DNA of 63,002 nt, counting the filler, from Octopus bimaculoides (taxonomy: Eukaryota), in the NCBI RefSeq assembly GCF_001194135.2. It is 4 parts of 4 records of this genome, joined end to end, with 100 filler letters (N's around TTAATTAATTAA, not from the genome) between each part and the next. Parts side by side here need not be neighbours in the genome. Positions count along the whole stretch, not along the records: positions 11,195 to 25,560 come from NC_069005.1; 3 more parts are not named here. One strand, written 5' to 3'. Shown here piece after piece: positions 17,179-17,681 of this stretch. Position numbers and translations under genes: made by a program. How positions within the stretch are numbered: position 1 is the stretch's first letter; each line of letters begins with the position of its first letter. The notes beneath the pieces were generated by a model. It had not been told where the DNA came from, ran no database searches, and saw only the letters and a program-made list of their open reading frames with translations.

Positions 17179-17395
17179 TTAACTCTAGCATTCGGGTTAA
17201 TTTATCATATGCAATGCTTATTTATCCACATTTTTTAAAACTGATCATGTATTACCTCAAATTTTGAAGATGTGATTGTTTATTTTTAGAATGACATCAT
17301 AGGGGAGGTGTGAGAGGCTGGATCTAGCCAGTTTGAACATAAAACGGGTAGAATATTTGGGCCCAGATATAGTTGATATAAAAGCTAAAGGGTTA
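17179..17395. mobile_element. Second copy of the TTAA-type MITE, inverted relative to 6012-6230
   Basis: Its reverse complement aligns along the whole 6012-6230 copy (for example ttctaaaaataaacaat shared). Left end TTAActctagcattc, right end gctaaagggTTA. Confidence 0.8.
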
Positions 17396-17407
17396 GGGTT
17401 AGGGTTA
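17390..17407 (+). repeat. Short telomere-type run GGG(TTAGGG)2TTA
   Basis: gggttagggttagggtta read directly, lying between a MITE end and the zinc-finger fragment. Confidence 0.85.
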
Positions 17408-17681
17408 TCGCATGTATCACAAGCATATGGCTGCTCTCCGGTGTGCACTCGTCGATGAGTCAATAAATGACTGTTCTGAGAGAAGCGTCTGTCACATATT
17501 TCACAATGGTAAGGTCTCTCTCCTGTATGAATTCGTTCGTGACTTGCCAAATGACTGCTCAATGAGAAAGATTCCCCACAATATTCACACTGGTGTGGTT
17601 TTTCACCTGTATGTATTCGCTTGTGACGATACAAGCCACTGCTTACCGAGTAAGTTTTCCCGCACAAGTCACAGTGATATG
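17405..17681 (-). pseudogene. Partial duplicate of the zinc-finger gene (fingers 1-3 and the start of finger 4)
   Basis: Ungapped alignment to 15338-15614 (offset 2067) with 9 substitutions in 277 bp by manual comparison. Confidence 0.9.

Follow-up and report, generated by a model that had tools for sequence, protein, structure and literature searches.

The window analysed here, 63,002 nucleotides of Octopus bimaculoides DNA in total, includes a piece of NC_069005.1 (positions 11,195 to 25,560, G+C 36%) in which a C2H2 zinc-finger gene, a putative transposon with a TTAA at its left boundary, a short telomeric array and a second, partial zinc-finger sequence lie within 3 kb of one another (Table 1). 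The 359-aa zinc-finger open reading frame (ORF) is encoded once in the indexed assemblies (Octopus bimaculoides GCA_001194135.2, CM046625.1, 28,716,160-28,737,239). The corresponding 21-kb locus, L001, covers the piece in reverse complement together with a further 6.4 kb. Assembly gaps interrupt the piece at 16133-16142, 21087-21276 and 22223-23153, the first of which interrupts a long (TG)n(TA)n tract that lies upstream of the zinc-finger ORF. The junction between the transposon and the partial zinc-finger sequence is located within 4.9 kb of uninterrupted sequence.

Table 1 Features at and around the junction (positions count along the window)
Feature	Position	Strand	Basis
C2H2 zinc-finger ORF, 359 aa, single-exon gene call in GCA_001194135.2	14755..15834	-	ORF call
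Closest available paralogous segment, inside the 14755-15834 gene	15338..15614	-	Alignment
TTAA, left boundary, candidate target-site duplication	17179..17182	+	Direct read
Body of putative piggyBac-like non-autonomous element, CTCTAGC... to ...GCTAAAGGG	17183..17392	+	Direct read, end comparison
(GGGTTA)x3 telomeric G-strand array	17390..17407	+	TRF; unique; 0.04 expected
TTA where the last hexamer and the zinc-finger homology overlap, candidate microhomology	17405..17407	+	Alignment
Zinc-finger fragment, 277 nt, sense on the minus strand	17405..17681	-	Alignment
Unassigned TGGTGAAGGTA linking the fragment to the (AT)n tract, possible filler	17682..17692	+	Homology stops at 17681
(AT)n microsatellite, right flank	17693..17722	.	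TRF

A putative TTAA-type element ends in telomeric hexamers

The interval 17179-17395 is a probable small transposon. An earlier note on this sequence had called it a full TTAA-type MITE with the canonical end ...ctaaagggTTAA, a description that is not confirmed here. The left TTAA is present, and the ends of the element (CTC.../...GGG) agree with the pattern of piggyBac-like elements, whose termini read C[C/A/T][C/A/T]...GGG and whose target is TTAA (PMC5381638). The inverted repeat is no better than in shuffled sequence, with an alignment score of 24 against a shuffle mean of 24.3 and a gapped match at 9 of 10 aligned bases; the terminal inverted-repeat criterion for a piggyBac-like MITE is 12-19 bp. 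No inverted-repeat pair linking the two ends was reported with a 6-nt seed, and no second copy of the element was found in the piece or in L001 (21 kb); the copy used for comparison in the earlier note (6012-6230) is not part of this piece. The right-hand target site reads TTAG, within the hexamer array, versus TTAA at the left.

Searches with the element returned no relatives. Rfam and tRNA scans of 17179-17700 gave no match, with no hammerhead or SINE signature, and translation of the element in several frames scored nothing against the protein collection. A 20-mer from the element end drew four chance 20-nt matches in a metagenome scan, with no extended homology, and an internal 23-mer drew nothing in a scan of prokaryote genomes. 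The left end of the element resembles the right end in direct orientation, at a score reached by 27/1000 shuffles. A second TTAA is located at 17197-17200, 14 nt after the first, and the left end thereby reads TTAA-CTCTAGCATTCGGG-TTAA (17179-17200). The 14 nt between the two sites themselves have CTC...GGG ends, and an internal GGGTTAA spans 17194-17200.

At the opposite end, direct reading of the junction gives ...gctaaaGGGTTAGGGTTAGGGTTAtcgcatg..., and of a longer stretch ...gatataaaagctaaaGGGTTAGGGTTAGGGTTAtcgcatgtatcacaagcatatggc..., and the junction coordinates and description in the earlier note prove exact by direct reading, Tandem Repeats Finder (TRF) and alignment. The three GGGTTA units are perfect; TRF places a perfect 6-nt array of 3.2 copies at 17389-17407. 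Allowing at most one mismatch, the 12-mer GGGTTAGGGTTA has a single site in the piece where 0.04 are expected from shuffles, and a scan of the 21-kb L001 found no such site beyond the junction. The first unit of the array consists of the element's own GGG and the TTA of the expected TTAA, and the extra bases are those at 17396-17407, or 17393-17407 if counted from GGG. These hexamers present the G-strand 5′ to 3′ outward from the 3′ end of the element and are in register with its AGGGTTA, with no phase shift. The array is internal to the chromosome, at ~28.7 Mb of the 35.5 Mb of CM046625.1, and with three units it lies below the four-unit cut-off of a published survey (PMC2246262). Direct reading of the left flank of the element revealed no telomeric sequence, and a 24-mer across the junction found nothing in a scan of viral contigs.

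The adjoining fragment is a dead copy of zinc-finger sequence

The last hexamer leads into a stretch that aligns without gaps to the adjacent zinc-finger gene over 277 nt, with 96.8% identity and nine mismatches (17405-17681 against 15338-15614). Homology begins with the TTA at 17405-17407, equivalent to 15338-15340, and ends at 17681, equivalent to 15614, so that the 277-bp copy and the shared TTA reported earlier agree with our alignment. The fragment comprises three complete C2H2 fingers and the start of a fourth (3.3 fingers). Its edges are sharp on both sides, fall off the finger boundaries and have no flanking homology. Neither a start codon nor splice signals are present in it. Read on the G-strand, the fragment runs antisense to the gene, as first-strand cDNA would. 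Beyond its right edge, the possible filler amounts to 9-11 nt and the right junction can be placed in more than one way; a search of the piece for a template of TGGTGAAGG found none.

An ORF of 136 aa (17257-17667, minus strand) runs from the fragment through the hexamers, which it reads as NPNPNP, and into the element. Exact look-up of this junction-spanning ORF returned nothing, it is absent from the gene calls, and the part of it that derives from the element has no protein relatives. The ORF is accidental, and the fragment itself is dead, with no apparent function.

Other origins for this arrangement were considered and set aside. Simple insertion of the element into a zinc-finger paralogue is ruled out by the left flank, which is not zinc-finger sequence, and unequal exchange between fingers does not account for fragment edges that lie off the finger boundaries. 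The fragment is not an exon, as its edges are without acceptor or donor signals and it has no start codon. Capture of a telomere-healed zinc-finger end would put the C-strand beside the fragment, the opposite of the polarity found. Nor does the piece show a composite or Pack-MULE-like element: the GGG terminus precedes the fragment and leaves it outside, the left terminus does not recur in inverted form beyond it, and no inverted-repeat pair encloses it.

The adjacent gene is probably not the template

The gene at 14755-15834 holds finger repeats of ~84 nt, and the earlier note had placed the donor of the fragment in it, with the shared TTA at 15338-15340. Three of the nine mismatches between the fragment and the segment at 15338-15614 fall within the first 13 nt past the join (hypergeometric P = 0.006), a clustering compatible both with error-prone synthesis right after the template was switched and with a template other than this segment. 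Seven of the nine differences are synonymous and two are non-synonymous (K to Q and I to T), giving a dS of 0.14, a dN of 0.009 and a dN/dS of 0.066. For a neutral dead copy beside a constrained parent, ~30% of changes are expected to be synonymous, and at least seven of nine has a P of about 0.004-0.006. The test weakens to P ~0.07 (hand calculation) once account is taken of three synonymous differences that pair a CpG of the fragment with a CpA of the gene; the pattern nevertheless resembles what separates two functional paralogues. This synonymous bias suggests that the fragment was probably copied from another functional paralogue and not from the adjacent gene. Judged by these substitutions, the source is probably another member of the same cluster, and the copying was perhaps very recent. 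The segment named as donor thus remains the closest one in reach but is probably not the template, which makes the donor coordinates, the picture of a copy made 2 kb away in cis and the length of the microhomology all provisional.

A second C2H2 gene of the cluster begins ~10 kb off, beyond the piece, in the terminal part of L001 (20776-21080). The called gene encodes 345 aa and is a candidate for the true template; ~300 nt of it are visible in the locus, with a linker motif at L001 position 20890. When compared with the protein collection, the 359-aa protein of the adjacent gene matched mostly vertebrate zinc fingers and no octopus protein. Its unique N-terminal 95 aa drew one candidate and no match from the same collection, and an exact-cluster look-up there found the full protein absent.

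A telomerase-assisted repair scar as a tentative model

We tentatively read the junction as a non-functional DNA-repair scar, produced by a break at the 3′ end of the element, the addition of about two telomeric hexamers, the copying of zinc-finger sequence and end-joining. Most likely, the junction is a one-off scar that belongs to a known class, the short interstitial telomeric insertions found where breaks were repaired. What the sequence itself shows is the polarity and register of the hexamers, the overlap and a dead fragment; that a break occurred, that telomerase supplied the hexamers and that the template was switched are inferences. In this model, the 3′ terminus of the piggyBac-like (TTAA-type) non-autonomous element would have suffered a double-strand break, either because the transposase cut one end only or because the neighbouring AT-rich flank broke. 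The exposed 3′ end, ...GCTAAAGGG(TTA), would have been in register with the TTAGGG telomerase template, and telomerase could then have extended it by 12-15 nt, or about two hexamers. The resulting ...GGGTTA-3′ may have paired by TTA/TAA microhomology with a C2H2 template, most likely the DNA of a paralogue in the same cluster and not the adjacent gene. About 277 nt would have been copied from this template before end-joining to the other side of the break near the (AT)n tract.

Several features are consistent with this model. The G-strand polarity outward from the element agrees with telomerase extending its 3′ end, following the logic applied to Tel-1 (PMC13085455). As described in the passage of 10.1101/015289 that cites Mitra 2008, the first step of piggyBac transposition is a nick exposing a 3′-OH at the transposon end beside TTAA. 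At this element, such a nick would leave ...GGG-3′OH, complementary to the TTAGGG template region. The zinc-finger homology starts inside the last hexamer, with an overlap of 3 nt, which also favours a repair scar. The general point made earlier that telomeric hexamers can be inserted at breaks is documented in mammals, where the insertion occurs at break-repair sites with 1-8 in-register nucleotides (PMC2246262), and these short arrays are sometimes co-inserted with other sequence (PMC2246262, PMC8537989). The assignment of TTAGGG as the molluscan telomere repeat is borne out for cephalopods, in which it is the only experimentally determined motif, and it is the motif of octopods (PMC13218726, PMC6160780). 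In Octopus vulgaris, PiggyBac families are listed among the recently active repeats (PMC13282606).

Other features count against a repair scar of this kind. Only one locus is involved, and the two added hexamers are fewer than the four or more units of the mammalian surveys. The right target site is TTAG and not TTAA, the identity of the element as a MITE is putative, and the sequence comes from a short-read assembly with gaps nearby. More specifically, the first unit of the array is native to the element, so any tandem re-copying of 6 nt would look telomeric, which weighs against telomerase; the adjacent gene is an unlikely template, which weighs against the exact microhomology as drawn. Polarity, register and microhomology also fit local slippage or polymerase-theta-type copying of the native GGGTTA, and telomerase is not separable here from these or from a subfamily trait. 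The earlier note had proposed essentially this mechanism, with the adjacent gene as donor. Its account fits the polarity, the register and the 3-nt overlap, which it shares with slippage and re-copying, and its choice of donor is doubtful. The mechanism is plausible and of a known kind, and its proof lies beyond a single locus.

Alternative explanations

The same scar may have formed with no part played by telomerase: replication may have slipped, or a polymerase-theta-type activity may have copied the terminal GGGTTA repeatedly while the ends were joined. As the first GGGTTA is native, tandem re-copying of 6 nt would yield the same sequence and the same polarity, and only two units need have been added; error-prone end joining typically leaves mismatches close to the join, as here, and a filler such as the 9-11 unassigned nt on the far side. 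A 6-mer present only once seldom slips, however, and both period and phase would have to match the telomere unit, in a perfect array that stops at TTA and not TTAA. We consider this course of events unlikely, although it deserves to be weighed. An improbable alternative is that the element family itself carries a short (GGGTTA)n tail and that the zinc-finger fragment reflects an unrelated rearrangement. The GGGTTAA at 17194-17200 in the left end, together with the direct resemblance of that end to the right one (27/1000 shuffles), hints at repetition of a terminal motif; a tail of this kind would nevertheless need a second event exactly at the end of the array, and would leave the TTA overlap to coincidence. 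The order of events could also be reversed, with a short interstitial telomeric tract, TTAGGGTTAGGGTTA, and the zinc-finger fragment in place first and the element inserted later at the edge of the tract (TTAG/TTAA), its GGG completing the third unit. The four bases after GGG are TTAG, one base off the left TTAA, and piggyBac-like elements are reported to use sites other than TTAA on rare occasions (PMC5381638). Two rare features would have to adjoin in phase by chance, and the left flank is without telomeric sequence, so that we regard a pre-existing tract as quite improbable.

It is very improbable that the junction is an artefact of assembly, in which contig extension or gap closure misplaced the fragment while short reads from a highly repeated gene family were being assembled. 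The three N-gaps in the piece and the membership of the fragment in a very large paralogous family would be in keeping with a misplacement of this sort. The uninterrupted 4.9 kb around the junction argues against it, as does the repeat itself, which at 18 nt is too short for mis-joining k-mer contigs, and the nine differences from the neighbouring gene indicate that the fragment is not a collapsed copy. Finally, the template may have been RNA: after the hexamers, telomerase or a LINE reverse transcriptase would have switched to a zinc-finger mRNA, and the fragment would be a short cDNA. Its first-strand polarity fits priming from ...GGGTTA-3′ on an mRNA reading ...GAUAA..., the synonymous bias among the differences suggests that the template was not the adjacent gene, and rodent loci pair telomeric repeats with retrotranscribed telomerase RNA (PMC2246262). 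Under DNA templating, however, the polarity is a one-in-two coincidence, the same-cluster gene 10 kb away could serve as a DNA template, and the fragment offers neither an intron for a splicing check nor a poly(A). We assign the RNA-templated course a slight probability.

Comparison with known junctions

Filler DNA and other templated insertions arise at break-repair junctions through synthesis-dependent strand annealing with template switching and through polymerase-theta end joining. Like these, the octopus junction has a near-identical copy between the presumed break ends, a candidate microhomology of a few nucleotides and signs of error-prone synthesis at the putative switch. The near-identical segment with sharp edges that characterizes a templated insertion is found here (277 nt, 96.8%, no flanking homology); the 3-nt TTA overlap at the left junction is measured against the neighbouring gene, which is probably not the true template. 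In contrast, 277 nt is long for a polymerase-theta insertion, and the octopus copy is preceded by telomeric hexamers.

Pack-MULEs and Helitrons are DNA transposons that capture gene fragments. The octopus junction resembles their products in that a host gene fragment is joined to a transposon. Unlike in those elements, the fragment lies outside the terminus, no second terminus is found beyond it, and the composite is without sign of mobility.

The closest parallels are with the short interstitial telomeric sequences of primates and rodents (Nergadze et al. 2004, 2007; PMC2246262, PMC8537989), which share with the octopus junction exact internal hexamers and co-inserted sequence; a break-side 3′ end in register is putative for the octopus. 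The surveys of that class used four or more units, whereas the octopus array has three, one of them native. The octopus seed is a transposon terminus and the co-insert a gene fragment, whereas the co-insert in the mammalian class is telomerase RNA. The primate and rodent insertions also have the proof of an empty site, while the octopus case is known from one locus.

Telomeric repeats also flank two transposon-like elements of ciliates, Tel-1 of Tetrahymena and TBE1 of Oxytricha, according to the passage of PMC13085455 that cites Cherry and Blackburn 1985 and Herrick et al. 1985. As at the octopus junction, the repeats abut the element and their G-strand lies on the 3′ side of its end, the arrangement proposed to result when telomerase acts on a free element end. 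In these ciliate germlines, the repeats occur at both ends and throughout the family. The octopus locus has them on a single end of a single copy, the left end being an ordinary TTAA.

Implications

If the junction is a genuine telomerase-assisted scar, a form of repair known chiefly from mammals would be seen in a mollusc as well. TTAA-type ends could then attract such repair, since a terminal GGG followed by TTA makes one telomere unit. A broader and quite improbable proposal is that piggyBac-type ends (...GGG-3′OH by TTAA) act as ready telomerase primers. Excisions of TTAA-type MITEs that fail or stay one-ended would then leave short interstitial telomeric tracts throughout the octopus genome, and the extended ends would copy nearby or transcribed genes, possibly through a switch of reverse transcriptase onto mRNA. 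Such a relationship would link a transposon family, telomerase and the dispersal of gene fragments. The significance of the present junction is modest unless TTAA-type ends recurrently carry added hexamers genome-wide.

The earlier note went further and suggested that MITEs seed the duplication of zinc-finger segments, a claim that finds no support in one dead 3.3-finger fragment. Nothing about the octopus zinc-finger expansion is measurable from a single non-functional junction, and at this locus the cluster consists of whole genes, two of them within ~10 kb.

Other repeats in the piece

The surrounding sequence contains further dispersed repeats. To the right of the junction region, a SINE-like repeat (cagtcatttgactgcggccatgctgga...) begins at ~17860-17900, and a 25-mer from it (17863-17887) found nothing in a scan of prokaryote genomes. 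A pair of tRNA-related SINE-like repeats is located at 16684-16790 and 19252-19352, the two being 75-89% identical over the aligned blocks, and 16691-16748 gives a weak Rfam tRNA match. A 49-nt inverted-repeat pair (18362-18410 and 18749-18797, 92% complementary) surrounds 338 nt and so delimits a 436-bp MITE-like element of a different family. Longer terminal inverted repeats of ~140 nt (20733-20872 and 21423-21570, 88-90%) bound an element of ~840 bp that is broken by the gap at 21087-21276. At the other side of the zinc-finger gene, a 133-nt dispersed repeat is present in three copies (12488-12620, 13282-13414 and 13475-13607) that are 65-81% identical.
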